64,000 nucleotides of DNA from Dicyema japonicum. Taxonomy: Eukaryota > Animalia > Dicyemida. Positions 1,672 through 57,310 of this stretch are shown in pieces. The DNA lies in NCBI GenBank assembly GCA_011109175.1, contig RDEW01000008.1:1555447-1619446 (forward strand), in the 5' to 3' direction. A program made the position numbers and the translations under genes. The notes beneath the pieces are model-generated. The model was not told the DNA's origin, did not search any database, and worked only from the letters and a program-made list of their open reading frames with translations. Position 1 is the stretch's first letter. Each line of letters starts with the position of its first letter.

Positions 1672-1860
1672 TATTAATAATAATAACCCCTAAAATGGAC
1701 ACCAAGAAAGAAGGAGTTAAACCATCTAATTAAGTGATCCCGGTAGATTTCAACAGGGTCTAGAGCTTTTTGCTGTGCTCCTCCATAGTACCACAGCTTT
1801 TCCGAATCCACGACGTTCCTTTTTCATGAGAATTTGGAGAGACGTGGCATGAGAATGAAT
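1672..1860 (-). mobile_element. 3' end of Ingi-like LINE (GIT-stop hairpin family)
   Basis: Minus strand encodes a decayed RRGFGKAV..MEEHSKK..LLKSTGIT*, then TAATTAG…GGTGTCC…GGGGTT and a (TTA)n tail. Confidence 0.8.
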
Positions 1861-3488
1861 AAATTAAAAGATCAGTAAGAATGAGGTGTTTGTATCTTTA
1901 TTTAATTTTTAAACAATAAACAAAAAGTCACTTACTTCGATATCCAATCGCTCCTTTGCTGCAATAATCATTGGGCAGAGTTAAAACATACAGGTAACCA
2001 AGGCACAATACGCTTCGCACACAAACGGCGCAAGCGTGACATCGTCGTCATAACAAGGAGAACATAACTGACTACGCTTTATCACGAAGAGCGGTAAGGG
2101 AATTCACAGCGAACAGGCACCTGCCATCTATTAAATCCCGTGCAGGCGAAGTCTTCAGCGCTGTTAATAGAACACAGTGATCTCTAGCAGACGATCTTGC
2201 CTATGATGAAAAAAAATTGAGAAAAGGTGAGTATAGCTTAATAACGTGAACTCTATGGCTTGAATCTGCTGTCCCTATTGCCCTCATCTAGAAACGCCCT
2301 TGCCTATCGGTCTCCTGAAAGTTAGTGAGGCCGGAGTTACTTAACTAACTAACATCCCTACTATGTTGGAACGTCATGTTGTTCACCTCCAAACGATGAC
2401 GTTTGGACATTTCGCTGATGAAATGAAAAAAGAATCACGTCTTTTCTCCTCATCAAAGTTATGCCTGCTGAATATATCCACAGAAAAAAACAAACTTCTT
2501 CTTATAACCTCAGTTTTTTTGATAACAATCTCGCAGAACGTGAACGGTATTTATTCCCTTTATACTTTTCTCATTTTCTGCCGCGGATAATGCGTTTACC
2601 ACACATAATGTTGGTTTAAGAAAAGGAGTCAATACACGTGGCGTCCCATATCAACGGCTTCTCCTTTACGAACTAAAAAGCGTAATTTCATCAAGCCGTT
2701 TTTAGTCTACTATGTCAAAGCCAACAAATTCCAGTACGGACTGAAATTCTGAATTTAATTCATCTCAGCAATTTTTAAATGAATATTATTTACTATTCTT
2801 CATATAATTGAACAGAGTAGCCAGCACATGACTGATTAATGTGGCATCGATGGGAATCACAGTACGATGACATGCAATCGCCTGGCTTTTAACTAAAAAC
2901 CCCAAGGACATGATAATTTCTAATTTATTTCTCAAAAAGCCTCATGTCTAGACCAGCTTAAAAGACCTTCACAGCCGTCTCTTGTCCTTTTGCGAATGCG
3001 TATAGTACGGTTCCAGTCTGGAAATATAAACCCTCGATCGGAAGCGCTTAGTAGACGTAGACATTTTCTGTGGACAGTGGTGTTTACACGTAAAAAAACC
3101 ATGAAACGTTTAGTCACTAAATACGGCAGTATACTCCACCATGATTACGTGTGATGGCATAATATGGTTGCAAGGTCTATTCATCTACTCTTGTACAAGA
3201 ATAAGATATCACATTTCAGAAAGTTGCGGACTCATAAAGTGTAGTCTGATGTTGTTGATGTATACCATAATATTCAAGAATTTGTGCTCTATGCTGAGTT
3301 ATCAGAAAATATAACTATCATAGAAATGGCCATTACTCACCAGGAGCATTTAAAAACAGTAAAAGTTAAGAAGCGAAAGTACGCCCTTGTCGAAAGCAAA
3401 TTTTGGAAAATGCATAAATGAAAACTCTAGGTTAATCTTTAAGTGATAAAGTTTATTTTCCTTAAAAATGAAAAATAGAGTTAGCGAA

Positions 3489-4560
3489 TTATTTTTTGAA
3501 GAAATTTTTTTCAAATTCCTTCTTTTCAGATTCCTTTTTTAAAATTTTATTAAAATTTGTAACGAAAATTGGTATCGGAATTGCTATCGTAAAAATTCCA
3601 CATATCGCGCAAATTGAGCAGACAATTTTCCCCAAAATACTCGTAGGGTAAATGTCTCCGTAACCGATTGTCGTAATTGTCACTACTGCCCACCAAAAAG
3701 AATTTGGTATGCTAATAAATTTCGTGTTCGGTACATTCATTTCTGCATAATAAATTATACTTGAAAAAATGACGACCAGAATCGCCAAAAAGAAAAATAT
3801 CATCGACAACTCCCGTAAAGATGAATATAAAGTTTGGCCGAGGATTTGGAGGTTATTTGAATATCTCGAGAGTTTGAAAATTCTCAAAATTCTCACCAAT
3901 CTCACAACTCGTATCGATTCAAGACTATTTGAATCCCATTTAACATAATTCTCCGTTATTAAAATATTTATAAAATACGGAAGAATCGACAACAAATCAA
4001 TCCAATTTAAAAAGTTTTTGAAAAATTTACATTTTTGTGGGGACAAAACAAATCGGAATGAAAGCTCGAATATAAACCAACCAATACAAACAGATTCAAT
4101 ATAGAAAAATATATTCTGGGTATTGTACTTATCTCTGAATTCAGGAATCGTTTCTGTCGAAAATACCGTAATTGACAGGATAATAATAATATTGGAAAAT
4201 AAAGCGTAAATTTTTGCATAAACTGAACTATTTGGATATTCGGCGAACATCCAAAGTTTTTTAATGACAGGATTCTTCGGCATTGCAGATTCCGACGTAT
4301 TAGTGATATTCGAGTTTGCCACGAATTCAAAAATAAATTCAGCGTCAAAGAAAAAAGAGACTTCGTTTCATAAAAATATCAATATGTACCTCTGGAGGGA
4401 TCTTGATGATCCCCCCACTTTGATAGAAATACAAAATGTTCTCGAAGCAAATTCGGCTTCTATCAAAAAAGTACTCCTTCCGTAAAATAATTCAATTATT
4501 TGGGACTTTGTCAAAATATAAAATCTCGTCTTCGAAAAATTTGTTAATTCAACATTCATT
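3489..4560 (-). CDS. Shaker (Kv1)-type voltage-gated K+ channel, intronless; T1 domain is out of frame (assembly indel or decay)
   Basis: The 277-aa ORF has S4 IRVVRLVRILRIFKLSRYS, pore WWAVVTITTIGYGD and S6 IAIPIP. The T1 motif RKEYFFDRSRICFENILYFYQSGG lies upstream in a different frame (break near 4345-4370). Confidence 0.88.
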
Positions 4561-4617
4561 TTTAAGAACAACGTCGAGGGTCATCCATTACGAAGTATCT
4601 GCTTGCGAGTGAATTTA

Positions 4618-4790
4618 TTTATTAACCCCGGGATCACCGAGAAAAAAAGACAAAAGTAAAGTCAACTAGTTAGGTGATCCCAGTTCTCGCAACCAAACGT
4701 GCCATCCGAAGCCTGTGCGTCTCCGTTGTTCCCACTGTCGAACGGAAATGCCTTCTTTGATCCTTGCAGAGGAAGCCGATTGGGGAAGAA
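4618..4790 (-). mobile_element. 3' end of Ingi-like LINE (GIT-stop hairpin family)
   Basis: RHFRSTVGTTETHRLRMARLVARTGIT*. An 11-bp stem CTGGGATCACC/GGTGATCCCGG (one G-U) is followed by GGTTAAT and an AT tail. Confidence 0.85.
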
Positions 4791-4984
4791 AATTTCTTAG
4801 CCAACCGATTTTCTTTTGCGTGGAACAGTGAGAGGCTTAGTGGGCAAGTGAATTAGCAAAATATGTTCGAGTTCTAAGAATAATAGTGACAAATTAAAAC
4901 AGCTATCTTTAAAAAAATATCGATTCTTTTTTATTAATAATTAATTGTTTGTTCCAGTGCTATAATTGTGTGATATAATGAGTT

Positions 4985-6130
4985 GTCCGCTCTTCCAGTC
5001 GCCTGACTCAATTTTTGTGCTCGACAATCATACTTTCTGATGTTTTCGTAAACCACTGATTAAATATAAGCTCTTATTGACACATCAATCGACAAAGTTT
5101 TTAAATGATTTCTGTACCACGTGGAGATAATCCCGTTCCATGTTAAAACCACAGGGATAATTCTCACAGGAGCATCCTATGGCAAGCTCAATTCTCTAGC
5201 AAGCAAGTCATAATTGTGTAGCTTTTCCACTTTTGTAATATTGAGTGCTTTTTTGAGGTGATTCCATCTTCTATAATCACAATCTCATTCTTCATTTTGG
5301 CATACACGAAAATGTCTGGTTTATTGCGCTGACTTCAGTGTCAGTCATGATGGAAGTTTCCACTCAGATTTCCACTCTGCGTCGTAACAATTGATCAGAC
5401 TGAATGCGTTTTAGACGTTTAGATTTCTTGCTGTCATAAATTCTACATAAATCCAGATGAATGCATCTAACAACTTCGTTGTGCCTCCTCATATAGTCAC
5501 TATTGAGCAATCTGCTACAACATGTAGCCAAATGATCCACTGGTTTCTTAGCCTTCTTGCAATGACTACAAACTGAATCATTGGTATTAAAAACAAGTTC
5601 CTGTCTTGAAGCGAACAATACATGCCCTCCGACCTCGATCTATTATTTCCACTGGTAAACCACTCCAAAGAAACCATAGCTGCATTCAGTTAAGTAAGCA
5701 TATCCGCTTTGACCAGCCTGAAAGGGATTTTCAGGGTCGAATCCCTAGCATCCCGTGGACTCAACAAATTTTCCATATATAAATATTTCTTTCGTGTGAC
5801 TATCAGCCATAATCTCCTTTGTATGAAAAATTCCAAATTCAACACTATTCTTCATAGGAATCCCTCCCTTAAGCAATTTCTTAACATTTGAAATGATTTT
5901 GCTGATTGAAAACCTCTCGTTAAAAGTGTCGGCAATCAATTGCCAGCCACTACGAGAAATCTTCTCGAATCTTGCTTTGGAACGACAGACAACTTCACTC
6001 TTCCACTGGCACTTGTTACTATGACAAACATTGGCGATCACTGTCCTCAGAGGTAGTAGATGGTCAGGTAAAGGCCGTTGTGGTCCAGCACTAATTCCAT
6101 GTGGTTCATGCAACCCTAGAGCCAAATGTC
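4985..6130 (-). mobile_element. RLE-type (R2/R4-group) non-LTR retrotransposon remnant, internally deleted
   Basis: Zn knuckle CSHC…DHLATCC, RRHNEVVRCIH, PD-(D/E)xK nuclease region (KPDIFVY…EIVIIE…YDLLA). An N-terminal segment at 5745-6125 is joined directly to the C-terminal part. Confidence 0.85.
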
Positions 6131-7080
6131 ATACTCCGGATAGTATATTTTCTTTCATCAAATCAGTAAGAAGGTAAAGGATTTGTTTTTGTACTTGAGA
6201 AAACAGACATACAATCAACCACAAAAAATATTAGTAAAGAAATCCAAAAGTTAAATAATTAAAAATAAAATTTGATGTGGATTTCTAAAGATGTACCTGT
6301 CTATAAGGACCTCGATGGAGAAACCATTAATAACGTAGATCGAGAGGTTTATGGGCTGTGTGGAAGGCAAAAATCTGCTATATTACGTCCTGATCTGCTG
6401 TTGCTACAATCTCATATCTCTACAGGAAATCATTGACCAAATGAAACGGAAAAAACAAGGTCTAATGGACGTCTGAAATCGATTAAACTGTTTGACCAAG
6501 ACTCAAAAGAATGGAGGATGGAATACATCCAAATCTGTGGTAAATTTGGAGAGTCTGACGAACGTCAAAAAAACAAAATCTACCTCTTCAATGGATCCAA
6601 AATATGAAAAGAAGATTCACTACGATTTTAAAGATTGTTGAATTAATTTTGTTATCAAATACAGCAAGTAAAGACAATCTCCCATAAATCATGGAAGTGT
6701 ACCAAAAAGTACCTTATCGGCTGGTGAGGTTGTGGAGATACTAATAGATAAGACAATAAGCGCAGTCACTTAATAATAAACCGGCTGTTCTCGAGTTTGA
6801 GAAAACGATCAGGCCTTAAAGCAAGTAAAGAGCGTCAGGTTTCCTTGCTCCTTCGACGCTGGAATATTTTAGGTCATCTAGGGAATTTCTACACGAGCAG
6901 GAGATCTCGTGATTGCTGGTGCCTATTTGAGCGAATCTCTCTCACCATCTTAAGGAAAATAGTCACACTGTATAACTCTCGGTTGATTGTTTCTTTATTT
7001 GAATAAAACTTTAGTAGATTACGATCCACTGGGGAGTGAATTAGCGATATAGATTTTTTTAGCAATAATACTGATGATAG

Positions 7081-9555: not shown

Positions 9556-9559
9556 GCCC

Positions 9560-9700
9560 ATTATTATTATTAAACCAAAAATCACCGACAAATTAAATAA
9601 TTACATATCTGTCAGGTGATTCCAGCCGACTAGCCGTCTCATTCTTGCTCGGTGTTCCTCCTGGGTTCCAACGCATTTCCGGATTGGGCGGGGGTTTCTA
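9560..9700 (-). mobile_element. 3' end of Ingi-like LINE (GIT-stop hairpin family)
   Basis: PIRKCVGTQEEHRARMRRL…GIT*. Stem GGAATCACC/GGTGATTTT is extended by GACAGAT/ATTTGTC. (TAA)n tail. Confidence 0.8.
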
Positions 9701-11850: not shown

Positions 11851-12033
11851 AGGCTTTTCTGCATGTTAATTTTTATTTCATATTTGTTTTACAAATTTCC
11901 AACATGCCACGAGAAACACATATGCGTATCATAGATCACTCCCAGAAATTAAAAACACACATCCCTTCCGCAAGAAGTAGATATGTTTTTATTACCTAAA
12001 CACACCTTAGGCAGAACTCACACTTAATTTCCA

Positions 12034-12180
12034 CAATAATAATACCAGAGACCACGGTTACAAAAAACTAATTGATCACGTGATCCCAGGTACTTCATCT
12101 TGGCCCGATGCTCCTTTCTCGACCCCACACAAGCACGTATCGGTCGAGTGACTTGACCTTTGCAGTCACGACGGCGCGTT
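12034..12180 (-). mobile_element. ~150-nt LINE-derived short element (GIT-stop hairpin family)
   Basis: RPIRACVGSRKEHRAKMKYLGIT*, stem GGGATCACG/CGTGGTCTC. Closely similar to 55368-55528 and ends at the same 5' point. Confidence 0.85.
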
Positions 12181-12789: not shown

Positions 12790-13300
12790 CTTCTCTATAA
12801 TATCGTCCTTCCAATCAATAATTGGTAGATCTAATAAAACATATATCTCAGTTTTGTTTAAAAATAGTGGCCTTCCAAAACCAATTGTGTTGATTAACAA
12901 ACACGGTTCTTTTCATTGTCCTTGTCAAATATTCCAGCAAAACATCGAGTATGTTTTTGTTGCGTGGAGATTAGCGCTAGTGGACACTACGCTCCACAGA
13001 TTCAATTCATTTTACCGAATAACTATTCGTATATTGGGCCCTCATACTGGATCATCAGTCACTTCCCTACTAACGAAAGCTACGCCTGTAGTCGCGGATC
13101 CAGATTCTTTCGCGTCTTTGAGATTGATGGAAACCCACTTCTCCTGTTTATAGCCAAGAAAAAAGAAAGACGGTTGGTACAAAATCAGATTCCTCTACAG
13201 GAATGAGAGGGGGCTCTTTCGTATGCTGTGGGAACAATGGAAGACCACAGACGTTGGATGGCGCAGTTGATTGTGGGAACTGGGATCACCTAACTATTTG
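12790..13300 (+). mobile_element. Ingi-like LINE C-terminal fragment
   Basis: IEY…AW motif. Ends AVGTMEDHRRWMAQLIVGTGIT* (GGGATCACCTAA at about 13282). The 3' arm of the hairpin is lost. Confidence 0.75.
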
Positions 13301-13699
13301 AGGATAACATCTCTATCAATATCTCTGTCCGAATCTGTTTACTCTTAATGGAAGAAACTATTAAAAATTAGTAAGGAGTACTGCGCAAGTGAAACCCTAA
13401 ATGTTCACATTCTATGGGGAAGTGGAAAAAGCTGTTAATTAATTAACTGAAATTAAATTTTCGAGTGATATTAACCGATTGGAGCATCTTAATTTTTGTA
13501 TCTCTGTTGAACCTGAATATGCTTGAAAGTGCAATGATACGTTTTAATAGTTTCATATAGCGCTATCTTGTTCTTGATGGACTCATTGCTATCATTAAAA
13601 ACCTTCGAAAATTAATAATCTAATTAATAATTCCCTTATTTCTCCTCAAAGTAGACTAACCCAATGAGAGATTTGAACCAACACCATAGTAACTCGACA

Positions 13700-18282: not shown

Positions 18283-18552
18283 TAAATATTGGCCGCTTGG
18301 TGTCATGTGATTGAAGATTGCTCCTCCTCCCCTCTGGAGGCGTCATTGGATCCACTTTACTCAGAAGACGCCTAATGCATGGCCGGCATTCAAATAGATC
18401 CATCTATTCGGTTCCTTGTGACGAGTTCTGTAATCGACCTCAGCTCCTCGGATAACGCTCTCTGGATCACTGTGCTTGGGCGAGAGGTCATGCTGGACGC
18501 CTCAGGATCGAGGAATTAGTTTGGTTTTAGCCTTGGTCTTTGGAATAATTTA
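18283..18552 (+). mobile_element. Non-autonomous LINE-derived element, family B
   Basis: 5' AAATATTGGCCGCTTGGTGTCATGTG head, pseudoknot module at 18339-18402, and 3' hairpin AGGATCGAGG-AATTAG…-CCTTGGTCTT with an AT tail. Homologous to 49731-49950. Confidence 0.75.
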
Positions 18553-19464
18553 ATAGATATACTCGTCTATACTATATTTACTTAAGTAGAACCTAAACTA
18601 AAAGCATTTTTAATCGGCTAATCTGGTCGAAGATGATGCTGTGGCTCTCTTACAAAATATCTAAGCTTTATTGGAGACCTATCTTGTTTTAGTTTCTTCT
18701 GACGTGGAAGAACTAAACGGAACACTAAGAAAACTTCGAAAAGTACCAGGTTCTGACCCTTGCTGTTCAAACTAAAAGAACATGAACAAAAGTCTCACAT
18801 CCGTCACCTCCTATATGCTAAGAGAAGAAAGAATGAAAGTTTTCATCCATTGAAGTTAAGTAGACGTCACATCTAAACATCTCAGGCTTCCAACCAATTA
18901 ACCACGTGGTTAACTGGTCCATGTAGTTCACTTTAATCAAACAAATTAAAAATTCTACTGAAATCGCTTTAACTAAATCAGTTGAATAAAATTAAGTTAT
19001 TTAACTGGAAATTAATCAATTATTTGAAAATAAATCAATATTGATATTTTTTTCTTTGTCACTAATATACTTGAAATTAAACTTAGGCCTCTCAGCTTGA
19101 GATCAATTTATGTTTGATAGTCAATTGTCATTCACTCAAAAAAATCTCTGATGTGGAACGTCACTTGTGTCGGTTCCTTCTCTGTCTCTCGTATTGCTTT
19201 ATCAGACTCCCCAAATAATGACTTAGCCATGAATATGAAGCTAAAAATATGCTGAGTCTGAAATCTCCTTCGAAGCCTCACTAAAGAACCATTACCGAGA
19301 ATCGAAATGGAATCATGAAAAGTTTCAGAGGTAGTAACTTATAATGACTATTATCCGCTGAAATGCTCTCTTTTGGTCTTTTAACTGCATTAAACTAACT
19401 GATTTTATTTGGTTTTGTTTTTAATTACTTACTGAACTGTACAGGATTTACCTCAAACTTTTTA

Positions 19465-21232: not shown

Positions 21233-21445
21233 ACCGCGTGGCGCCTTGTGGTGCTTTGTCTCTGGAGCCCTCATTAAACAAAACTCCGGCATGCGGGAAG
21301 GTGGCCCTGCAAATACAGTCAGCCGCCCTATACGAGCTTGTGTGGGTACGAGAGAGGAGCACCGGGAAAAAATGAGGATTTTGGCGGAGCGCATCGGATC
21401 ACGTGATAGTTATTTGGTTTTACGTGGTTTTGGGTGTTAAATAAA
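21233..21445 (+). mobile_element. Non-autonomous LINE-derived element, family C (5' head fused to LINE 3' end)
   Basis: Head CCGCGTGGCGCCTTGTGGTGCT is joined to RPIRACVGTREEHREKMRIL…GGATCACGTGA. Stem GGATCACGTGA/TTACGTGGTTT. Confidence 0.75.
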
Positions 21446-22499
21446 TTATAAATGTGGCTAAAAAAAGTATTTTAATCGATTTGATGGCGGATTGAGGGGA
21501 TTAAAAAATGAACTCGAAAATACATACAACCTAGATGTCCTTCGAAAAAGCCTTCTCAAGGAGAGAGTAGAGGAATCTATCATGGAAGATTATCAATGGT
21601 ATGCATAAGAGACGAGAAGATAACTTGGACTCATTCTCCTCATTAATTAGCAATCAAATTGATAAGCATAATGGAAAGGCAAAAAACCTCATAAGTAATT
21701 TTCTAATTTGTGACATAAGCTCTATAATGTTACCAGCATTAAATCCTTATTTATTTTTTACAGTTTTAAAATATCTTTTATAGAGAAAAATCCCCTTTCT
21801 TTAAAAAAATTAATAGAATCCTCAATATTTTTAGGTAGATTAAAGAGATTAAGTTGTTTCCACATGAACAGTAATGACAACGTGGAGTATTTGTAGATAA
21901 AAAATTAAAAAAATAATAAATAAAAAATAAAATTATTCGTAAGAAATCATTATTTAAATATTTACTTTTTAACTAAAAAAGTACCATATATTGATTTTGT
22001 TGCAGGAAAGTGGCGGTCATTATCTAAATAAGCACCAGATTAACTAAAATGAATAATAGTCTCTGCAATCTCGCGGATGATGCGCTTGACAAGCATGATG
22101 GAAAGTCTCTGGACATGTATTGAAAATGGACCTGGAAGCCACAGCGAGCGTGATCATGGATGATTTCTTAAGTTCTCTTTTGAAAAAAACTGTCCAAGTG
22201 ATGTTTTTGGTCTTCAGATTTTTATTAAAATCAGATTTGATGCAAACAGCATAGCCTATTTTTATATTATTTTTTTGAAACTTTTTATTTGCATTTTCTT
22301 GCACCTTTCTTTTTAAAACTTTCGAAATGTTCCGATGTTTGATGATCTAATTCAATTTCTGAAAGAGAACAAGTTTTTGAATTTCATTTTCTGAAAAATG
22401 TTCAGTTCTTTGGGTTGGTGTTCAATGTTAAGTACTTTGGTTCTTTATTATCAGACAGCCAATCAAATTATTAGATCTAGATTGAAATAAAGTTTTCGC

Positions 22500-22985
22500 T
22501 AACCAACGCTTCAGCGATTGAGTATAGCGTTCTAGTTGCCGTGTGATTGAGGGTCTCTTGGTCTTCTATGAATCGCCTTTATCCCTAAATCACATAATAA
22601 TCTTGAAACTTCAAAGTTACAAAACTCTTTTCCATAATCCGTATGTAAGATTGCAGGTGGCCCATGCGGCATATTCAATCAGATACAATATCAATCAGAT
22701 ACTTCAGTCTCCTTTCAGAGGCCGCTATGTTGAGAAATATGCAGGACTTCCTACGTATTTGCAAGGAGCTAGAAACCCATTCAGAGAAAGGGCGGTCCAT
22801 GTGGATGGAATTCAGTCCAATAGAATAAAAAAGTGAACTCCGGTAGAATTTTTCTGCAGACATAAAAGAAGACACACTTCTGTGTGCAGTTGGATCGCTC
22901 GAGGATAATTCGAGAAATGTCGAGGCTGTGATCACCTAATTAGCGAGTTAATACTTTCTTGGTGGTTTTGGGGTTTTAAAAATAA
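22500..22985 (+). mobile_element. Ingi-like LINE 3' fragment (subfamily shared with 30250 and 55925)
   Basis: TYLQGARNPFRERAVH matches 30310-30495. Ends GTGATCACCTAATTAG…GGTGGTTTTGGGGTTTTAAA. Confidence 0.8.
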
Positions 22986-23744
22986 ATGACAGCTGTCAGA
23001 TTACAAATGACAGGTGATGGTAACCAGTCCAGCATGCTACATATTATTATGTACTTTTGTTTCTGTACTTATTATCGTATCTACACTAACTTCCACATCA
23101 CATTAGTGACTGAATTGTACTGAATGGGTTTCCAACTTCTAAGACTGTTTTAACCCGTATTATGGGGGAAATGCAGACGTATACCTTGCAACTTAGTTAT
23201 AGAAGAGTCATTAGTTGTTTCATCTAGTTTCTGGATGATTACTAGTTTTTTGGTGAAATTAGTAGTTACAATTTGCCACATCATTTTCAAAAAAGTAAAT
23301 TACTATCATGTATCAGGTATAATACTCCATTAATCTGAATTAGTTGTTCCCACGCATTAAAAAAGAAGACTCAGTTAAGTCGACATTGATTTTATCAAAA
23401 AATTCAGCAGGAGCACGTGAATGTTATTCTTTTGTAATTCATCTAACATTTTGACAGAGAATGCCAGAATTTTATTTTTTTATTTTTGACTGATGAATTC
23501 TACGATTGTAGCCATATTTATTTTTCTTCGATTAAATGGCCCGTAAAATTCCAATTTCTCCATGTTCCATTGGAGAAGTATTTGCTTACTTTTATTTGTA
23601 ACGGACGCCAACCATCTTCTAAGAATTGGAGAAACATTTACTTACCTTTATTTGTAAATGATGCCAGCCCTCTTCCAAGAATTGGAAAAGCATCTATCTT
23701 CCATTGATTTCTCTATTGGGCTCATTCATAAGTAGGTCGGATGG

Positions 23745-23940
23745 AAAAACCAACAAAAACCGACAAATTAGGAGCGAATACGTGGCCATCAGGTGATCCC
23801 GGCCTCCTTAAAAGCTATCTCACATTCGGTCGGTGTTCGTCCCGAGATCTGTACATGTTATTTTTGGAAACTTTGGAGGTGTCAATAGGCTTCTATTCTC
23901 CTCACAAGTACCTTGAAAGAAGTTAATGTATCTGTCAGTC
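23745..23940 (-). mobile_element. 3' end of Ingi-like LINE (GIT-stop family), degraded
   Basis: SRDEHR… peptide followed by GGGATCACCTGA (GIT*), then AATTTGTCGGT as in the 9560 copy. Confidence 0.65.
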
Positions 23941-28154: not shown

Positions 28155-28979
28155 TACTGGTTCTGGTTCTACTAGAAATCTCTCCTGTCAAAAAAATGTA
28201 ACAAAATAAGAGTTAATCACTAAATATGTAAAAACCATGATTGCATGGCTAATTCCTCTCAAAATTGCAAGCGAAATTCGTTAGAATAGCTGTGGCGCTT
28301 GCTGAGATTTGATTCTCAAGTCGACCCAGAAATTCTAGCGTCGAGGGTCCAATGGCACCAAAAATCGCCACAGCAAAAAAGAGTAAACATCACTTAGTCT
28401 GTTAAGTCAGCATACTATTTTATTTTTAACATTTCGGCTTTTAAAGTGGTCGAACAATTTTTGGGTACATTCTTATGGATGTTGCTTGGCCAAAAGTATC
28501 AGTGATGGTAATGTCTGACCATAGGTTTCCCGACTTTAAACGGAAAGATGGACATCCATGTGCAAAATCGTACAAACAACGTTGAGAATCTTGGGATGGA
28601 GGAAGGAACGAATGAAGATGGTTCCGAGTCTCGACTAAGTGGCCGACGTGATTATTTCATTAATAATACTATCAACGTGAGAGATCTCCAAGTTACGATG
28701 TGAGCGAAGATAACTGCGCTTATATTTTTAAAGCAAATAATAACACAAAAAAATTAACCATTTTGGGTTCACAAATCTAAGAATACTTCTCAAGAGCAGC
28801 ATCTATGCATGGTAACTGTGAATTTTTTGGAATATCGAAGATTCCAAGTTTATTTTTTGGATCATAAGGATTTTTAGAATAGGCTATATTTTTTACTAAA
28901 TCGAAAATATTCTTAAATAAACAAAAAATGAATTTGCACTTTAGTCGACAAATAGTAGTAAAATTCTTTTCCAAATTGA

Positions 28980-29300
28980 TTTTTAACCTCGACACCGCAA
29001 GAAAAAGGATCAGAGTAATCGTTTAAATTAAGTGATCCTGGTGTCCACATCAAGCTATCTCTCGTGGTTGGTTTTGGATTCCTGAAATAACGGTTGAGTT
29101 AATCTCATCCAGCGTTTTCTATCCCTCGCCTTTGTCCCAAGTGTATCTAGATCTTCACTTGTCCTCAGACTCGGACCCAATTTTGAGAGGTCTTTATTCA
29201 GAACTATGGGTAAGGTTGTCGTCTCTTCCACCGAAGCCACCGATTCCACAGCAATTGGAGTAAAAATCCGTTTTTTTTGGCCAACGAATTCTAATAACTA
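28980..29300 (-). mobile_element. RTE-like LINE C-terminus fused to an Ingi-like 3' hairpin end
   Basis: TTLPIVLNKDL…LRTSEDLDTL…RDRKRW followed by QESKTNH…DTRIT*, homologous to the end of 47400-49725. Confidence 0.6.
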
Positions 29301-30249: not shown

Positions 30250-30510
30250 TATTATTTATTTATTTTAAAACCTCAAGACAACCAATAAAAAATGAATTAA
30301 CTCGCTAAATTAAGTGATCCCAGCCTTCAACATCTCTCGAATTCTCTTCGAATGTTCCGCCAGTGAACCAACAGCGTTTCTGAAGTGTCTTCTTTTATTT
30401 CTGCAGAGTAATTCTATCAGAGTGTACTTTTTTAATGCCAATCTGAATTTCTCCGCATGAACCACTCTCTGAATGGGTTTCCTAGCTCCTTGCACATACG
30501 TAAGAAGTTT
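30250..30510 (-). mobile_element. 3' end of Ingi-like LINE
   Basis: RRHFRNAVGSLAEHSKRIREMLKAGIT*. Highly similar to 55925-56180. Confidence 0.88.
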
Positions 30511-34214: not shown

Positions 34215-34455
34215 ACTGAATATTTGAAAATTAGTAACTAATTAATAATTTGCCCGTTTCTTCTCAAAAAGACTTTGGGCCGGAAATAAAACTATATCTG
34301 TACGCCTACCGATATACAAAAAGAAACCTTCCCCTTACGGGAGATTAATCCAAACTCCATGACTAACTGCAGGAGAAAGTCTGATATGGAAACCGAGATC
34401 ACTTAACTTAGAAAATAACTCTTATCCTCTTTCTTGTGATTCTGTGGTTAATGAA
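34215..34455 (+). mobile_element. 3' end of Ingi-like LINE (subfamily of 47400-49725)
   Basis: KKPSPL…DMETEIT*, then GATCAC…GTGATT stem and GGTTAAT. Confidence 0.75.
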
Positions 34456-34859
34456 ATTAGATTAAATTAAAACAGACATGCTCAAGTTTCCCTAAATTTA
34501 GGCCAGGGGGATGCGAACTCAAGTAAAGGTGCATCAGATGCCTTTTTATTTGATTCCTTCGTCTCCGGTTTTAGTTGTTTTTTCACATTTTGAAGATCTT
34601 TTTAAGAGGAATTGGCAAAGTTACACATTATCAGCTATGGAATCCCGATTTGCCGTCCATGGCTCAGTTTCCAGGAGCTTAATAGCACATGAGATATTAA
34701 GCCCTTCTTAAATAGTTGATCTGAAGGTCGTGGATTGCGTGGATCTGATCTTCACAGTCAACTCGTGGTCGCAGTCAATTCAAAAGCAATCAAATATTAT
34801 TGAAAGGGCCATATGGTTGTAATATTAATTAATTAATCCAAGGAATATGCAAGACATTG

Positions 34860-44324: not shown

Positions 44325-45250
44325 TAAACTAAAATATCCTTCTTCTACGAAGATTTTCAAAAGTCATCCACATGACTTCCACTCCTCCTCGGACTGTGGG
44401 TCCGCCGCTCCAATGTTCCCGCTCTTCCATTCGCCTCGACGCGTAAAGGATTTCGTCAATTGGTATCTTGACTCCATGTTTGTGCTCGACAATGATACTC
44501 TCTAATGTTTTCTTTAAAACCACCGATTGAAGATAAGCTCTTATTGGCACATTAATCGATAAAGCTTTCAAATGATTTCTGTAGCACGTGGATATAATCC
44601 CGTCCATGTAAAAACCATAGGAATAATTCTCACTTGAGCATCGTATAGCATGCTCAATTCTTTAGCGAGAAAGTCATAGTTTGTAGCTTTTCCACCTCTG
44701 TATTCTTAAGTGCTTTTTTGAGGTGATTCCATCTTCTATAATCACAATCTCATTTTTCCTTTTGTCATACACGAAAATGTCTGGCTTATTGTGTTGCACT
44801 TCAGTGTCAGTCATGATAATAATAACCTTGGATATACCGAGAAAGAAGTTAAAGTAAACAACTAATTAAGTGTATCCTTTTTCCACTTCTACAGAAACAG
44901 AGTCCATCCGGAATCAGCATAAAGGGTAAGACGTCCATATTTGCAGTTGTGGAAACCCCTCCAGTGGAGTGGGAAAGCGAATGATCTTTTTCGTGCCTGG
45001 CACTGGGCGCCACCTAGACAGATGGATCACATGACGCCACTCTAATAGGACGAGAGAGGAGGAACAGACGAACAAACAGAAACTACAACCAATTAGCCAC
45101 GAAGCACCACATGACGCCACGCGGCCAGAAGAATATTTAGTCATGATGCAAGTGTCCACTCAGATTTCCACTCTCTGTGTCGTAACAACTCATCGAACTG
45201 AGTGTGTTTTTGAACGTCTAGATTTCTTTATGTCATACATTCTACATAAA
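44325..45250 (-). mobile_element. RLE-type non-LTR retrotransposon C-terminus (same family as 4985-6130), interrupted by a family A element
   Basis: High nucleotide similarity to 5000-5450. Peptide DGIISTCYRNHLKAL…AYLQSVVLKKTLESI. Confidence 0.88.
44818..45138 (-). mobile_element. Non-autonomous LINE-derived element, family A, with target-site duplication
   Basis: Flanked by the 9-bp TSD AGTCATGAT (44809-44817 and 45139-45147). Has a (TTA)n tail and is highly similar to 55575-55895. The empty site is visible in the paralogous RLE copy at about 5343-5351. Confidence 0.92.
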
Positions 45251-47399: not shown

Positions 47400-49725
47400 C
47401 TGAAAAAAATGGATAAATTATCTTACTCTGTTTTTCTGTGGAGATGTCGAGGAAAATCCTGGACCAGACTTAATCATATTACAAATTAACATCAATGGTA
47501 TCCGAACAAAATTGCCGAACTACAACTATTTCTTATAAATCACTCAGTGGATTTAGCTCTTTTCCAAAAGATGTTTTCAGGCGAGACAGAGGTCATGGAA
47601 AGGGATGAGGCTTTATTACGCTAATCAGGAAGCATATAATGACCAGAAATATTTCGGATGACATCCTGGACCCCTTCCACCACGACGACACACTGGAACA
47701 ACTAACTCTGAGAATCTTCCTACCCTCTCTCCTATTGACAGTTTTCAATATGTACATACCTCTTCACCGTCATGCCTCAGTGACTACAGGCCGAACTCAA
47801 GGGATTCACCAGGTTGGGAAACACTAATTGGCGGTGCCCTAAATGCGAAGAGTTCTCAATAGTATGCTGACCAACAACTGGATCAACGGGGAGTCCTCAT
47901 ATCCGACAGTTTTGACGACCTGATCATTCTCAATAATCCAAGCAAACACACAAGGACCCCTTCCCGTCAAGGTGACTCCCCTATTTCACCCGACATTTCT
48001 CTTGCCGCTCCTTTTCTTGCGACTGTCATTTTATGGGATGTTATATACGACTTACATACTGAACATAATCCGATCTTAATGAGAATCACACAAAAACGTA
48101 AGTTAATGAACACTCCGAGAACCAATGTTTACTTCTCAAAGGCAATATGGCTCACTTTCACATATTTTATCGAACTAAACCTTCAGGTCTTTCGGATAGA
48201 GGATTTCGGATCTATCAATGCTGCTGTCAATACCTCAACGTGATTATACTCCGAGCTCGCAAAAGATACATTCCGATGGGCGTTCTCAACGTCCATCACA
48301 CCCAATTGATGCTGGAATGCGAGCTCTAGTCCAAACGAGAAATAATCTAAAGAAATTCGAAAGATAATCAGTGGACGTAATTGAAAGGATATCAAAACTG
48401 AATAAAGAAATCATGCAGAGCATCACAAAACACAACAAAGAACGTTGGGAAGCCATGCTCAGAAAAGCTACGAATAATACTTCCACCAATGTATTATGGA
48501 AATCGATAAGGAGGCTCAAGAAGTGCTCTTCACATTTAATTGGACATCGAGAGCCATGTCCAAATCCCAATAACATTATGAAGTACTATGTGAATATTAT
48601 TCATAAATCATATTCAAAAGACCTGGATGTTCGTTCAAGCCAAGGAAGGAATAAATGTCCCAACATGACTTTCTTCGACCCGTCAATGGTGCACTCAGTA
48701 ATCAGGAAAATAAATAACTCGTCATCCCGCGGTTCAAATGACATGACTCTCATGACTCTGATGACTCTCGAACTGAAACACCTGAGTCCTTCAGCGACGG
48801 CCGCAAAGCACAAATTTTCAGTAACTTCATAAACGGTCGAATGGACTAAGTGGTTGTAAACAACCAAAAATCAAAACCTCGATACTTTCCAAATGGAGTT
48901 ACACAAGAATCACCGTTGTCACTAATACTTTTCAACATGTTCCTTCTCCAGCCACCAAAAACTCAATTCTTTTATTGTATGCGAAGAATCGAGGAGGCGA
49001 CAAAGTCCGTGCAAGATCTACTAAACCTGATGGGTCTTAGGTTCCTGAAGAACAGTCTAAATATATCGCCAGGAAAGTCACATGTAATGACGTTTTCCTC
49101 AGCACGAAAATAAATACAACAATACCAGGAATAAAGTTGTATGATTCCCCGTTCCTCATTAAGAATACCATTTCAATCCTTGAGTCATCCTGGATCTTCT
49201 CCTCATATTCACTCATCAACTAGAACTGGTAACCTCAAGAATCCAAAAGAAAATTGGAATTTTCAAGGCTTTTACTCACTCCCCATTATCTTCCCGTCAA
49301 TCGTTGGAGCTACTATACAAACAATTTGTTCTACCCAGTATCGAGTACTTCTGTGCTGCATGAATAGTTCTGCTATCACTATGGCACAGAGAAAGCTGGA
49401 AGTGTTACAAAACTGATTTTTCAGAATCTTATTGAGCCACGTAGTTAATAAAATACTAAACGTCCCCCAATCATGGAATACATTACGGAACGTCATCGGG
49501 ACTTCCTCAAGATGGCAAAGTCCCCTTACCATCCCCTCGGGCCGTACATCAAACTATATATGGACGCCTGCCCGAGATGTGAGAAGAAACCTTCCCCGCT
49601 GTGGAGATTAATTCAGGACTCCAAAACTAACCACAGGAAAAGGACTGATATGGACATCGGGATCACTTAATTAGACGATAGCTTTATCCTCTTTCTCGTG
49701 ATTTCGGGGTTAATAACATAAAATA
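47400..49725 (+). mobile_element. Long decayed APE-RT LINE (Ingi/Vingi-like) with N-terminal 2A motif
   Basis: CGDVEENPGP, then LIILQININGIR (APE start), NMYIP, SPDISL, TEHNPIL and RT GVTQESPLSLILFN. Ends MDIGIT* with the 3' hairpin and AT tail. Part of the RT is deleted. Confidence 0.88.
47437..47466 (+). other. 2A/StopGo ribosomal skipping motif CGDVEENPGP
   Basis: TGT GGA GAT GTC GAG GAA AAT CCT GGA CCA, in frame with the APE domain start. Confidence 0.85.
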
Positions 49726-49730
49726 AATAA

Positions 49731-51492: not shown

Positions 51493-53185
51493 TCATAAAA
51501 TTATACATTTAATTATCTGATATTCAAGGAGTAAGGAAAAGATTATAAAAATGACGTATGAAACAATCATAGAAACTCCCAGTAATTTTGTCATTTTATA
51601 CTGAGACAGTGCGATTATCACCACCACACTTAACAACATAGCAAACAGCATCAAAACTGAGCAGAACATTCCTTTACTGCTTATATCAACTGGGATTCGT
51701 GACACCATCCAGTATAACAGCCATGGAAACGGAAGACTATTCTAAAAAAACCATATTTTACCCGACACAGACGTCGAAAAGATTACTTCCAATTGAACTA
51801 GAGACTGCCATGTCCCCAAATCCCTTTTTAGTGACAATATAGCTGGTTATCAAATCGGGAATACTTGTCCCTGCTGCAAGCAATGTCAGTCCCATTACCC
51901 GAATTTTGAATCAACTCAAACCTCATTTGGGATCCCAAAAGTGGTCCCAAACTGGTTCGCCCACCAAACCATTAAGTACGAGAATATGGCGATCCACAAA
52001 ATACTATTAATAAACGTGATAATGTAGAATTTTCTCATTTTCTATAAAAACACTGAAATTGTATACTTGACTGTTGACATTGGGGATAGTAAAATAAAGC
52101 AAAAAATTGATGGGAAAAAGAAGGACACATTTTATTCGACCATAAATAGAATCGGGCCAGTCAACCAACCCGCCCTCCTCCTAAATCTAATTTAATTTTT
52201 AGAATATTTCTCACCCGATCATTCGAATCTGTCGTTTCCTTTAAATTTATATTACTAAAATACATTTTTTCCAACTTCAATCTGTTTTTCAGAGACTTTA
52301 GAAGTATTAATTGTATTTTACCTGGAACTACCGTCGACAACCGTTTCTGAGAGCCACTGATGCGAACGAAAACTATTGAGTTCTGGGATAAATAAAAAAA
52401 CATACTTTCCTTCCGACTTGCTGAGTATTCAAGTTTTTCAAAATTTTGTTTTTTACGTAATTTTCGATGTTTCTGTTGTATTTCATAAAAAGGACGTAAA
52501 CAAAGTACCAAAGAAATAAAATGAGGGCCTCCCACCAGAAAATTTTGTTATCGACGAAGAATATTATCAACATTATAAGGGAGATGACGTAAAATACCAT
52601 ATCCCGAAAAAGTGGCCACCAAGTCAGAGTTAAAACAGTCGCACTGGACAGAGCACAGAATCCGATGACGAACAAAATGTTGAAAACGGCGGATCCGATT
52701 ATAGTACCAATTCCAATGTTACTGTGGGCTAGAAAAATTCCAATTATCGAAGTAAAAAGTTCAGGAGCACTTCCTCCAGCAGCCATAAAGGTGGCCCCAG
52801 CAACATCTTCACTAATGTCCAACTTTTCAATGATTACTTCCAACGAGGGAACAAAATAAGAATCACATACAATCGCCAGAGCGATGAACATGTAAAAAAT
52901 CCCGATAATGTGTAAAATAACTGCTCCCTGTTTCCTCTGGCAGATGTCGAAAATATCATTTGGGTAATTTCCAACCAAGTGATCCTCACAAGAGCTTGAT
53001 TGGACTGAAAGAAGATTTTTCGACTTCACATGTAAAATGTACTCGCTAGAAACTCTTTTCGAGCAGATTATCATAACATAAAATAATACTAGAGTTACAC
53101 AAATCTGCTTGACTCTTTTAAAGCACCCCAACCCTCGTGGATTGCATAGTTTGCCCAATAATGCCCAGATTTTATCAATTGCCAT
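51493..53185 (-). CDS. K+-dependent Na+/Ca2+ exchanger (NCKX, SLC24 family)
   Basis: [29 protein letters not shown]; alpha-1 repeat [22 protein letters not shown]…GSAVFNIL; alpha-2 repeat [18 protein letters not shown]…[15 protein letters not shown]. Mini-introns in the 3' half. Confidence 0.95.
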
Positions 53186-54199
53186 TGTGGAGTAAACGAT
53201 GCTAATTGTATTTGAACTGTTTTGTAAACGTAATCAGTACAATCAATGATGGACATGAATACATCGGCAGATTAATTGAATTCTGACAAGGGTGACAATG
53301 AGTGATTAGATGGGCCTTCATTTATGTGAAGATGGGGATCTCTATTTGCCCGATATCTGTAAAATTAATTATTTTGAACTAAAGTTAAATAAGTTTTAAT
53401 TTTGGGAGTGATTGCAATTAAATGGTTAATTGTTGCCAATTACATTTATTGTTTTCTAATCAATACAACTAATGCAATTGCAAAAACTTCACAATTTTCA
53501 TGTAATTGGCAAATTACAATAAATCATGTGAGACTCGGTAATAGTCCTACACGTGCCAGAAATTTTAAAGTTGATAAAAATTACTTTTGTCATCACTTAA
53601 TTTAAAAAAATAGGATTTTAAAATAAGTAACGTCTGCCGAATTAACGTTCTTTAAAACTAGCCTGAGAAGAATATTCTTTTCCTTTACGTTTGTCCTCCA
53701 ATCTATCATTTTCATATTTTTTTCTGTCAAATATAATTGGATGATACTATAAGAGCATGAATTCAGACCATCGTGAACGAGAAGATATTTGAGAGCATGA
53801 GGATAGAACATAAATTTGGGTTGGTCATATTGGCCAACTCACGGAAAAATGATATCGATATTGGGACAATCCATGGAGAAAATGTTAATTGAGAATGATG
53901 TTTGTTCAAGAGTCTGGACTAAGGAATTGATAGAAAAAATCCTGGACAGTCCAAATTATCTACTAGGAAAAACATGCAATTGTGGGTTGACTGGCTCAAA
54001 GAGAAAAATTAAATGAGATGGAATTTGAAACAATTTTAATATATGACAAATTTTCAAAAATTCGTATTTAATTGCAATGTCAGAATATTTAGGATCTTTA
54101 AGGTCTCTAGCATAGATAGGCAGATTAGCTCCTGAGTCAATTTTTAATACACCATTATATAACTCTAGCCGAGATAGAATAGAAGAGTGTCATACCTTG

Positions 54200-54400
54200 A
54201 AAAATTCAGATGCTTCCCGGTTCGAACCTCATGCTGTCCATTCTGGCTGTAGGTTCAACTTATCTACGATGCTTCATTGCTTGACGAGTGATACCGTAAT
54301 CAGTGATACCTTACTGCGGAACCAGATTGTCTGCAGGAACTCACACGCAACCAAAAAAGACTTAAGAACATCTCTTGGCATAAGTAAAATGGTTATTGTA
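54200..54400 (+). mobile_element. tRNA-derived SINE family T, diverged
   Basis: GGTTCGAACC, ATCTACGATGCTT, TTGACGAGTGATACCGTAATCAGTGA, ACTGCGGAACCAGATTGTCT. Confidence 0.7.
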
Positions 54401-55367
54401 AAAATGCTGTTATTATATTACTATCCATAAAATACAATATATTCTCAATGTTAAAATTCTCGGGTAATTGGTTGGTGGTGTTTGATTATTTCTCAAATGG
54501 TTCTTGTTAATTTCTAGAATATATAATCCTCATCTAAGGTAGCCATTGCAAAGCGACCAAGAGACGGCCCAAATTTTCTCGTCACTCCATATTCTAAATT
54601 TCCCCCTCAGATATCTGGTAGCGTCCGTTTTTGGCTGTAACTTTCGTGTTAACCAGCGGTTTCTTTCATCTAGAGTGGTCAAGGCTAAGTAAAAAGACAT
54701 ATAGCAATAATAAGTGATTCGATTCCCTCGAAGGTTTTATCGTCTTGTGCTTGGTTTTTTTCTATTCTCCTGTCTCAGAAGACTCCAAGTTCTATTAAAA
54801 ATGAAAAAATGATCATTTGCTCTCCCAGAGTTCAGTGGATAATTTCTTTGTGGATTCACACAATAGTGGTTCCGGAAAAACTTATCCATGAGATTGTGTG
54901 CGTGGTTACTGGATGCACTCAATTGCTTGTTAACTGTCGACTTCTTTTTCGGTGTATCAGGGCTTAATAAAAAGAAAGTTTCCAAAATCTTCGAGTTTGA
55001 ACCCTAATTATATACAACATTTCATCAGTTCTTCATCTTGAAGTGACAAGAATTAAGGGATAAATCTATAATAAGGCGGAGATGTTATCTACAAAAAATA
55101 CGTCACTATCTTTAATAACTCAAGCAATTTAAGCTCTACCAATTCTGATACGAGGATTAATATTTCCGATTAATAATTAAACCGAATTGTCTTAGTCAAA
55201 TTTATGGAGTTTAACCTTTAAACCGAATATATGAAAATTGCCGCCATCCTCATTATCTGAGAAGTGAGTCCGTTTAGTGACACTGAGGTTTTTAAATCAG
55301 CCTTTTCTTAAAAAAGATTGTCTTTTTCTTTAACTGTGTTGAATCATCTTCATAACGCAACTATTAG

Positions 55368-55528
55368 ATAATAATAATAACATCAGAGACCACGGTTACA
55401 CAAACTAACTAATAGCGTGATCCCAGCACGCTCTAGCAGGGACCTCATCTTGGCCCGATCTCTTCCCTGACCCCACACAAGCACGCATCGGTTGAATGAC
55501 TGTATCTTCGCAGTCACGACGGCGTGTT
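55368..55528 (-). mobile_element. ~150-nt LINE-derived short element
   Basis: Matches 12034-12180 end to end. Stem GGGATCACG/CGTGGTCTC and (TTA)n tail. Confidence 0.85.
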
Positions 55529-55574
55529 ACATGGTTAAATCTTTTTATAATCTCAAATTTGTTAATAACTGTAA

Positions 55575-55895
55575 CGAGCCGCGTGGCGCCATGTGGTGCT
55601 GCGTGGCTAATTGGTTGAAGCTTTCTGTTTGCTTGTCTGTTCCTCCTCTCTCTTCCTATTAGAGTGGCGTCATGTGATCCACCTGTCTAGGTGGCGCCCA
55701 GTGCCTGGCTGGCACGAAAAAAGATCATTCACTTTCCCCCACTCCACTGGAGGGGTTTCCACAACTGCAAATATGGACGTCTTACCCTTTATGCTGATTC
55801 CGGATGGACTCTGTTACTGTAGAAGTGGAAAAATGATACACTTAATTAGTTGTTTACTTTAACTTCTTTCTCGTGTATCCGGGGTTAATAAATTA
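55575..55895 (+). mobile_element. Non-autonomous LINE-derived element, family A
   Basis: 5' hairpin AGCCGCGTGGCGCCA-TG-TGGTGCTGCGTGGCT, pseudoknot module at 55666-55728, and 3' hairpin GATACAC…GTGTATC plus GGGGTTAAT. Confidence 0.9.
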
Positions 55896-55924
55896 AAAAA
55901 ATTAAAAAATCTCAAATTATTTTA

Positions 55925-57310
55925 TTATTTATTTTATTTTAAAACCCCAAGACCATTAAGAAAGAAAGAATTAACTTGCTAAATTAAGTGATCCCAGCCT
56001 CCAACATCTCTTGAATTCTCTTCGAATGCTCCACCAGTGAACCAACAGCATTTCTGAAGTGTCTTCTTTTATTTCTGCAGAGGAATTCTATCGGAGTGCA
56101 CTTTTTTAATGCCGATCTGAATTCCTCCGCATAACCATCCTCTCTCGGAATGGGTTTCCTAGCTCATTGCTCATACGTATTTCTCACCGTCCTCCTCTGA
56201 AAAGACTGGGGATGGATGTGGAGTCTGATTGAATATGCCTCTTGATCTTCCGTCTGAGAGAGTTCATACGCTCCACCCTCGTAGAAGGAATTGCGAATCT
56301 CCAGGCAGAGCAAGCATATTCAATCGTCGGCGCAATAACTTGGAGATATATTTTTCTGACACAAGCAGTAGGAAAGGGGCTCTTTTTATTCCATTTTCGA
56401 AGACCCTTGGTTAACACCTCCTCCCTGTGACTGGGGAACGTCATAAAAGAGTCGAAAGTTACTCCAAGGATCTTCTGGATTCGAGTATAAGGGATGGGAA
56501 TGTTTCCGCGGAATATCTCAAGTTCACTTTTAAATCTTCTGTCCGTAGTAAATAGGGTGAACTGAGACTTGGATACAAACACAGAGCAACTTCATGGATA
56601 GCCAGTCACACACCTGGTTGAGGTGTGACTGAGCCACCGCCACAGCGCTGGAGGAAGATTTGTCTCTTGCAGCGATAATCAGATCGTCCGCATAAGATAA
56701 AAACATGGTGTCCTGATCATTAATAGTAAGTAAATCGTGTAGAAATAAGTTAAATAAGAGAGAAGACAGAGGGGAGCCTTGTGGGACCCCATTAGGGAGT
56801 AGTCTTGATTTTGAAGTAATTTTTCCAATCCGGAGTCTTCCACGTCGGCCATTTAAGAAATTTTCCAGCCATAGCATAATGCTCGGATGTAAATTTGAGT
56901 TAAAGATCTTTTTTGTTAGGAGAGTCCTCAAAACCAAGTCGAAGGCTTTCTGTATATCTATTTTTTTTAAAAGCCTTTTTACGAGAGCCATAGTATTTAT
57001 AGCTCCGCATAGGCAGGACACACACTTTATTTAAGTAAAGAACAGTTAATTTTAACTAATCGTAGAACCAAGGAATGATCTTCACTTCTTTTTGTTCTTT
57101 TTCTTGTGTGAGTGTCTTTCTAGACAATCCAGTTCCGCAGTGAGTATTCACTGATGACGGCGTCACTCGTCAAACCCTTTCTGCATCGTAGATGCGTGGA
57201 ACCTTCCACCAGGTGAACAGCAGCGAGATTCGAACCCGTAGCCTAAGCCACTTAAGCCCGACACCTAACCACTATGCAACCCGGCTGTATATCTATAGAC
57301 ACCAGAAATT
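55925..57310 (-). mobile_element. 5'-truncated Ingi-like LINE (RT to 3' end), interrupted by a SINE
   Basis: LVSIDIQ[SINE]KAFD, GVPQGSPLSSLLFN, YADDL, KILGVTFD, IEYACSAW. Ends MLEAGIT* with hairpin and AT tail. Confidence 0.92.
56962..57284 (-). mobile_element. Full-length tRNA-derived SINE family T with 12-bp TSD
   Basis: TSD CTGTATATCTAT at 56950-56961 and 57285-57296. A-box TGCATAGTGG, B-box GGTTCGAATC and a short A tail. Confidence 0.93.

Follow-up and report, generated by a model that had tools for sequence, protein, structure and literature searches.

Several long interspersed nuclear elements (LINEs) carry a stem-loop at their 3' end, which in case of ZfL2 and UnaL2 was characterised in binding and mobility assays that have revealed its interaction with the ORF2 protein and its requirement for mobility (PMC4176376, PMC1636434). 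A common 3' hairpin with compensatory mutations is found in plant LINEs of the RTE clade and in Au-like short interspersed nuclear elements (PMC6007223), review tables describe non-autonomous elements composed of an RTE 5' end and an RTE tail alongside microsatellite 3' repeats (PMC3747384), and in CR1 a hairpin plus microsatellite, thought to be the recognition site of the reverse transcriptase (RT), has been kept across a LINE radiation (PMC8665684). A signal of this kind, which is already known from L2, CR1, RTE and plant L1, probably underlies the repeated 3' ends of diverged retroelements in a stretch of 64,000 nucleotides from the genome of Dicyema japonicum, a parasite of octopuses (contig RDEW01000008.1, positions 1,555,447-1,619,446), hereafter the window. 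We consider it highly probable that the hairpin shared by these ends is a 3'-terminal recognition module, a tail of the stringent type, that belongs to a radiation of LINEs encoding an endonuclease and an RT and that was borrowed by non-autonomous elements. Its distinctive feature, as judged from the sequence, is that the final three codons of the open reading frame (ORF) double as one arm of the hairpin. The D. japonicum genome (36.7% GC, 49% repeats) was described in a paper that mentions copies of 'LINE-1 ORF2' only, and these elements are not described therein (PMC6736024).

The initial annotation of the window had listed about 17 retroelement ends with a common 3' hairpin, a few of them degraded or lacking the 3' arm. 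We have built a covariance model (CM) of the tail from a MAFFT alignment of 16 ends, and its matches together with a reading of the sequence confirm both arms in 15 of the 17, located near 1740, 4680, 9620, 12085, 18510, 21400, 22930, 29035, 30315, 34400, 44875, 49665, 55420, 55840 and 55990, while the ends at 13285(+) and 23795(-) are indeed degraded; every arm pair quoted initially is present as written. In the window the model finds 16 strong matches (E 7e-14 to 2e-6), 15 of which are ends already listed. The motif GGATCAC occurs 21 times in the window compared to 5.5 expected, a count that is reached in 0 of 100 shuffles. The proposed layout, extending from this motif through the loop and the complementary arm to a repetitive tail, was confirmed by reading the 17 ends, the correction being that the tails go beyond TAA/TTA and, from lineage to lineage, comprise (TAAA/AATA)n, (ATT)n or (TAA)n. 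When clustered by the 400 nt upstream of the hairpin, the ends fall into at least 7 groups that are mutually unalignable as DNA, and at least 10 lineages carry the hairpin tail. The claim that this tail is common to diverged LINEs and non-autonomous elements thus holds, since it was found in deeply diverged lineages, here designated by letters, and in a non-coding element of about 320 nt termed type N. The ends in the window are as follows:

1669..1749, minus strand: tail hairpin with a 3-nt bulge in the 3' arm, GGGATCACT / GGTG-TCC-ATTTT (CM 59.3 bits).
4609..4689, minus strand: tail hairpin of the older form of lineage A, GGGATCACC / GGTGATCCC, with TAA stop and a perfect 11-bp stem (CM 68.3 bits; fold -22.3 kcal/mol, z -4.1; ORF tail ...ARTGIT*).
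9559..9631, minus strand: tail hairpin of lineage E, GGAATCACC TGA / GGTGATTTT, with A-U in place of G-C at position 3 and Gly encoded by GGA (CM 51 bits).
12026..12095, minus strand: tail hairpin of lineage D, GGGATCACG TGA / CGTGGTCTC, with closing pair G-C (CM 52.5 bits).
13283..13301, plus strand: degraded end with 5' arm GGGATCACC and TAA, its 3' arm gone, with lineage-A-like C-terminal coding sequence at 12926-13287 (from sequence; no CM match).
18496..18562, plus strand: tail hairpin of lineage H, AGGATCGAGG / CCTTGGTCTT, with a rebuilt stem top (CM 39.9 bits).
21387..21453, plus strand: tail hairpin of a lineage D variant, CGGATCACGTGA / ACGTGGTTTT (CM 47 bits; fold).
22920..22990, plus strand: tail hairpin related to lineages B and C, GTGATCACC / GGTGGTTTT (CM 63.6 bits).
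23740..23799, minus strand: degraded lineage-E-like end, GGGATCACC TGA, with a 3' arm damaged by deletion (from sequence; no CM match).
28967..29047, minus strand: decayed tail hairpin of lineage F, AGGATCACT ... (CM 52.4 bits).
30254..30329, minus strand: tail hairpin of lineage C, GGGATCACT / GGTTGTCTT (CM 65.9 bits; ORF tail ...MLKAGIT*).
34387..34464, plus strand: decayed tail hairpin of lineage F, GAGATCACT / TGTGATTCT (CM 56.7 bits).
44809..45147, minus strand: non-coding type N element of about 320 nt with terminal hairpin GGATACAC / GGTATATCC (CM 58.2 bits).
47480..49726, plus strand: near full-length, decayed LINE of lineage F with endonuclease, RT and C-terminus ...SKTNH...GIT*, 26-45% identical to the intact 1037-residue ORF described below (tblastn), and with its hairpin at 49651-49726 (CM 71.9 bits; fold -15 kcal/mol).
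54903..54980, plus strand: decayed type N tail hairpin, absent from the first list (CM 41.5 bits, E 7.5e-7).
55364..55432, minus strand: tail hairpin of lineage D, GGGATCACG / CGTGGTCTC, with mutated stop codon (CM 51.3 bits).
55577..55901, plus strand: non-coding type N element of about 320 nt with terminal hairpin GATACAC / GTGTATC (CM 69.9 bits).
55927..57021, minus strand: 5'-truncated LINE of lineage C comprising an RT fragment at 56530-57021 (Pfam RVT_1, E 9.5e-19), the C-terminal region and the hairpin at 55927-56003 (CM 69.2 bits; tblastn).

The stem contains 9 core pairs and is extended to 11 by an outer C-G and an outer U-G pair, formed where the CT or CC that usually precedes the 5' arm meets the GG following the 3' arm. 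Its 5' arm, GG(G/A) ATC AC(N), begins at the Gly codon and encodes Gly-Ile-Thr as the last three residues of the protein, and the G-I-T-stop frame proposed initially was found in most copies when the ORF tails were read. In contrast to the same proposal, the stop codon is not part of the stem; it occupies the three loop bases next to the 5' arm (TAA in lineages A, B, C, F and, untranslated, in type N, TGA in D and E, TAG in G), and the 5' arm consists of the last three sense codons only. The loop is 25-45 nt long, usually opens with a (T)TAG(T/A)T motif and has a pyrimidine-rich end in most lineages. On its 3' side the stem is followed by GG(GG)TT or TGG and by the lineage-specific (TAAA/AATA)n, (ATT)n or (TAA)n, at a distance of about 45-60 nt between stop and repeat. 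The same 9-pair stem was obtained with RNAalifold on the MAFFT alignment of the 16 ends, and ten lineage representatives all fold into this stem with 10-11 bp (-10.4 to -26.1 kcal/mol, z -1.2 to -5.8). In most lineages (T)TAG(T/A)T is located within 2-12 nt of the stop (e.g. window 49669-49676 and 55843-55850) and provides another stop codon, either in frame or shifted to +1; the motif might act as a recognition site in the loop or as a back-up stop. Lineage G (L031:6836-6899(-); 397 copies) contains a second helix inside the loop, GUUAGAUGAGAA… / …UUCUCUUUGAC, resulting in a two-part hairpin of -26 kcal/mol. A precursor of a microRNA-like or other small RNA was considered and rejected, as a stem of 9-11 bp with a loop of 25-45 nt is unfit for this role.

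The relationship between both arms is reflected in the alignments. In the MAFFT alignment, which was fitted to no structure, 88% of the cells are paired, compared to 79% after shuffling (0 of 500 shuffles reach 88%) and to 26-47% if the partner is slid by 1-3 columns, and in a 54-copy alignment fitted to the model the equivalent values are 91.5%, 79% and 28-57%. We have further analysed 53 copies, grouped into families that we have defined ourselves, by comparing private deviations from the commonest state of a family with differences between families. The 48 private changes comprise 21 that preserve the pair and 27 that disrupt it, with no two-sided change among them, whereas of the 12 derived states at the level of families 10 are paired and 5 two-sided (Fisher p 0.02 for the difference in pairing and 1e-4 for that in two-sided changes). 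Since dead copies decay neutrally, selection becomes visible only between lineages, and it acts on the stem in active lineages only. The covariation of the arms that had been claimed initially was found in lineages with multiple copies, and the compensated stem states thus belong to lineages that have multiplied. This is illustrated by counts of the exact arms in the whole genome (assembly of 67,542,437 bases in 377 contigs), where a control with the reversed pattern gives 0 for each state:

Closing pair G-C, ACG / CGTG, in lineage D: 478 copies.
Closing pair U-A, ACT / AGTG, in lineage G: 397 copies.
A-U at stem position 3, GGA / ...TTT, in lineage E: 87 copies.
Rebuilt stem top, GGATCGAGG / CCTTGGTC, in lineage H: 40 copies.
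Three consecutive pairs changed, GGATACAC / GTGTATCC, in type N: 426 copies.

A pattern in which neither arm is constrained (A-N64-TTYYY-N9-GGGGTTWWWW) has 361 matches compared to 39 in the control. In 100 listed rows of this sample inspected by eye, about 80 carry both arms, about 10 are noise, as predicted by the control, and about 8 are cut inside the loop and thus contain the 3' arm and the tail only.

Three observations concern individual stem variants. The degraded end at 23740..23799(-) contains GGG instead of GGA facing a U-rich 3' arm, which would correspond to the expected G-U intermediate between G-C and A-U. A few ends with the arms GG(A/G)TATAC / (N)TATATCC (G000:C1:802200, C68:1089023 and similar rows) may represent yet another non-coding lineage, distinguished from type N by a C-G pair that has turned into U-A. 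Two copies resembling lineage C, located 50 kb apart (C101:356400-356488 and C101:406426-406514), display the same clean loss of the whole 5' arm (…GGAGGCC|TAATTAG…) and retain loop, 3' arm and tail; they probably originate from a local duplication of one damaged copy.

The hairpin has a distinct polarity. In 49 of the 53 copies the sense strand folds better than the antisense strand (-12.3 vs -7.9 kcal/mol, with -6.3 kcal/mol for shuffled sequence), a difference that is a consequence of G-U pairs, which account for 15 of the 72 core pairs at the level of families and which turn into C.A mismatches on the complementary strand. This bias argues for a function in RNA and not in duplex DNA. The inverted repeat might instead work as DNA, either by folding back of the cDNA to prime the second strand or as palindromic site for protein binding or integration. 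In principle, either strand of an inverted repeat is able to fold, and second-strand priming in LINEs is poorly understood; with the frequent G-U pairs and an antisense fold that is barely better than shuffled sequence, we nevertheless regard a role at the level of DNA as very unlikely.

The overlap of the stem with coding sequence is pronounced in the comparison of nine representatives of coding lineages. In the 54 nt upstream of the arm, their pairwise nucleotide identity ranges from 0.17 to 0.6 with third positions close to random, and exactly at the edge of the stem it rises to 1.0, a value held by seven of the nine positions in the arm, with lower values at the wobble positions of Gly (0.78) and Thr (0.33). 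The Ile codon is ATC in 9 of 9 lineages, a codon that makes up 30% of the Ile codons in these ORFs, where GGG makes up 21% of the Gly codons. If only the C-terminal Gly-Ile-Thr peptide were conserved for its function and the complementary arm were incidental, it would be expected that the 5' arm in coding lineages varies solely at third codon positions, as is the case. However, this proposal leaves unexplained why the non-coding 3' arm changes along with the synonymous sites, why the synonymous C of ATC is invariant and why the hairpin is present in the non-coding type N and in lineage H, where the peptide is different, and it thus appears highly improbable.

In lineage H the reading frame is homologous to lineage D, with ..GMLERVRIEELVS.. 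in place of ..LLERAGIT-stop, and reads R-I-E-E with the stop lost. Its hairpin is fully paired, even though G-I-T and the stop codon are gone. The upstream frame is open over 60 nt in the commonest form of 13 copies, several of which contain indels of 1 nt, and it extends across the entire hairpin (..RIEELVSLVT..) in the direction of the A/T repeat. In this lineage, either the hairpin is coding throughout or the elements spread in trans, and lineage H may be a dead lineage that was mobilised in trans. The suggestion that the G-I-T terminus is imposed by the RNA signal receives support from the abrupt rise in nucleotide identity at the stem edge, from the invariant ATC and from lineage H. It is weakened by the exclusive variation of the 5' arm at third codon positions in the nine coding representatives and by the change of three consecutive pairs in the non-coding type N, which argue against a purely RNA-based cause, since a restricted coding arm and a freer type N would be expected if change were also limited by the peptide or by the difficulty of meeting two constraints at once. 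The G-I-T peptide may thus itself be under selection, and a terminus dictated by RNA is, on the sequences compared, plausible but unproven.

Type N illustrates the association of the hairpin with non-coding elements. The copy at 44809..45147 is 92% identical over 314 nt to 55577-55896. Type N copies are either full-length or truncated at many points on the 5' side, share one common 3' end and are flanked by repeats of 7-9 bp, such as the 9-nt repeat ATCATGACT on either side of 44809..45147. By these features, which are a signature of retrotransposition, type N is best described as a non-autonomous partner that carries the tail of a LINE.

The same element bears on the question whether the main role of the hairpin would be in translation or in the fate of the RNA instead of recognition by the RT. 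In the former case, a ribosome stalled or released at the stop codon would allow the new protein to load onto its own RNA and thereby confer cis preference, and in the latter the hairpin would either stabilise the 3' end of a transcript lacking poly(A) or determine its position. Both are in accord with the position of the stop, which opens the loop immediately behind the 5' arm whether it is TAA, TGA or TAG, so that the terminating ribosome must have melted the stem, and with the presence of A/T-rich terminal repeats in place of poly(A). In contrast, the untranslated type N keeps the hairpin in 426 copies with exact arms and lineage H keeps it without a stop in this place, demonstrating that the arrangement of the stop codon is not needed for spread. 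A main role of this kind is in our view unlikely; it would be compatible with recognition by the RT, to which it may add without replacing it. We also consider it rather doubtful, if conceivable, that the stop at the mouth of the hairpin is itself functional in the sense that the ribosome melts the stem, which then refolds next to the RT that was just released, thus providing a built-in cis preference. If true, it would explain why G-I-T-stop and hairpin were kept together across proteins that are only 30-45% identical.

The proteins associated with the tail are defined by an intact ORF of 1037 residues (L013:2051-5164), in which Pfam identifies an apurinic/apyrimidinic (AP) endonuclease (Exo_endo_phos) and an RT (RVT_1) and no other domain. 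The ORF ends with ...ARTGII*, followed by the hairpin, and its family is young, with numerous copies showing 100% identity in the final 200 residues. Identity in the RT and the C-terminal region is about 30-45% between lineages and 52-72% between B and C. The C-terminal tail conforms to R..FR..VG..EH..R...GIT* in lineages A-E and differs in F and G (..SKTNH.. or ..QESRPRRTRP..), which yet also end with GIT*. A word-based protein search retrieved 22 homologues with at most 33% identity, and a comparison with protein clusters gave generic AP endonuclease-RT clusters. All 150 scored genome matches of the tail model have E < 1e-7, and 17 matches were found in 200 kb chosen regardless of content, which would extrapolate to several thousand copies. 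In the RNA runs searched the young lineage was not found, and it was detected only in contigs of four runs of a single 2019 study for which the kind of run is unrecorded.

We thus return to the interpretation of the hairpin as a 3'-terminal recognition module. By analogy with characterised stringent LINEs, we infer that the ORF protein of an element would bind its own stem-loop and then begin target-primed reverse transcription within the terminal repeat. Copies would thereby share their 3' end and be truncated from the 5' side, and short non-coding elements that bear the tail, such as type N, would be copied in trans. Since the 5' arm is also coding, active lineages could alter it almost only at third codon positions, with each change matched in the 3' arm.

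Several findings weigh against this interpretation. At the expected distance, the hairpin was found in 16 of 36 loci anchored on the RT and it is thus missing from this place in the other 20, three of which we have inspected: L007 is interrupted right after the stop, in L010 the protein similarity ends before the end of the ORF and L018 adjoins an assembly gap, while the other loci are too decayed for a judgement. The genome may therefore contain LINE families with other 3' ends. The family comparison is based on a small sample of 53 copies, and copies found with a covariance model are biased towards structure. A U.U mismatch at stem position 5 is present as family-level state in two abundant lineages (young A and F2), which implies that a perfect stem is not required; this mismatch is tolerated, or possibly preferred. 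Within families B and C, the test for epistasis at the closing pair gave no signal (5/43 vs 3/57, p 0.28). Among 100 listed copies of these two families the closing pair is C-G in 54, U-G in 38, U-A in 5 and C.A in 3, variants that resemble private mutations, and the test consequently speaks neither way. Copies with the U.U mismatch have the arms GGGATCAC / GTGTTCCC and include L013:5145-5221, L014:3138-3215, L012:1190-1267 and F-like F2 rows with the 3' arm GTGTTCCC; older copies of lineage A contain U-A at the position where young A contains U.U.

Collectively, these elements offer a natural experiment on the evolution of a LINE tail whose recognition hairpin shares one arm with the protein-coding sequence. 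Here only synonymous sites change, each with a matching change in the non-coding arm, a non-coding passenger drifts with greater freedom, and the dead copies serve as an internal neutral control. The elements account for much of the repeat load of a genome that is 49% repetitive and whose LINEs are without detailed description (PMC6736024), and thousands of its element ends are amenable to annotation with the tail model or with simple arm patterns.

The window also includes a host gene located amid the retroelement ends, a 270-residue ORF at 52373-53185(-) that contains the Pfam domain Na_Ca_ex of sodium/calcium exchangers (E 5e-33). Searched against curated Rfam families, the hairpin has no match at the gathering score, and the sole Rfam match in the window is the unrelated potassium-channel RNA editing signal K_chan_RES at 3555-3668(-), with 63 bits compared to a gathering score of 51. 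It is located inside a 277-residue ORF (3489-4322(-)), probably an exon of a Shaker/Kv1-type channel, and may thus reflect conserved coding sequence and not an editing hairpin.

The elements can be compared with several known systems. The I factor of Drosophila ends in TAA-type repeats and not in poly(A), as is the case here; however, I elements encode an RNase H and a separate ORF1, whereas Pfam finds no RNase H in the intact 1037-residue ORF. With CR1 they share the succession of a hairpin and a short repeat across a radiation, but the 8-nt microsatellite ATTCTRTG of CR1 is absent and replaced by the tails (TAAA/AATA)n, (ATT)n and (TAA)n. The resemblance to the L2-clade elements UnaL2, ZfL2-1 and ZfL2-2 concerns the conserved 3'-terminal stem-loop that adjoins a short tandem repeat and is common to non-autonomous partners. 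Unlike in ZfL2-1 and ZfL2-2, where the stem-loop resides in the 3' untranslated region (PMC4176376), its 5' arm here corresponds to the last three codons and the stop opens the loop, and the terminal repeats of the L2 clade are unlike those found here. The likeness to L2 and SART1 is best viewed as a functional analogy. In the RTE and LINE literature searched, whose coverage is incomplete, no description was found of a hairpin that overlaps the stop region, and we do not claim this overlap as new. As in stringent-type LINEs, a 3'-terminal stem-loop is located beside short tandem repeats, displays compensatory change between lineages and is present as tail on a non-autonomous partner.

Members of the RTE clade are compact elements with one long ORF encoding AP endonuclease and RT, a very short 3' untranslated region and short A/T-rich terminal repeats. 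The elements of D. japonicum equally contain one ORF of about 1000 residues with both activities predicted and no RNase H, a distance of about 50 nt from the stop to the A/T repeat, and partners that are built from LINE ends. In these features, their architecture looks RTE-like.

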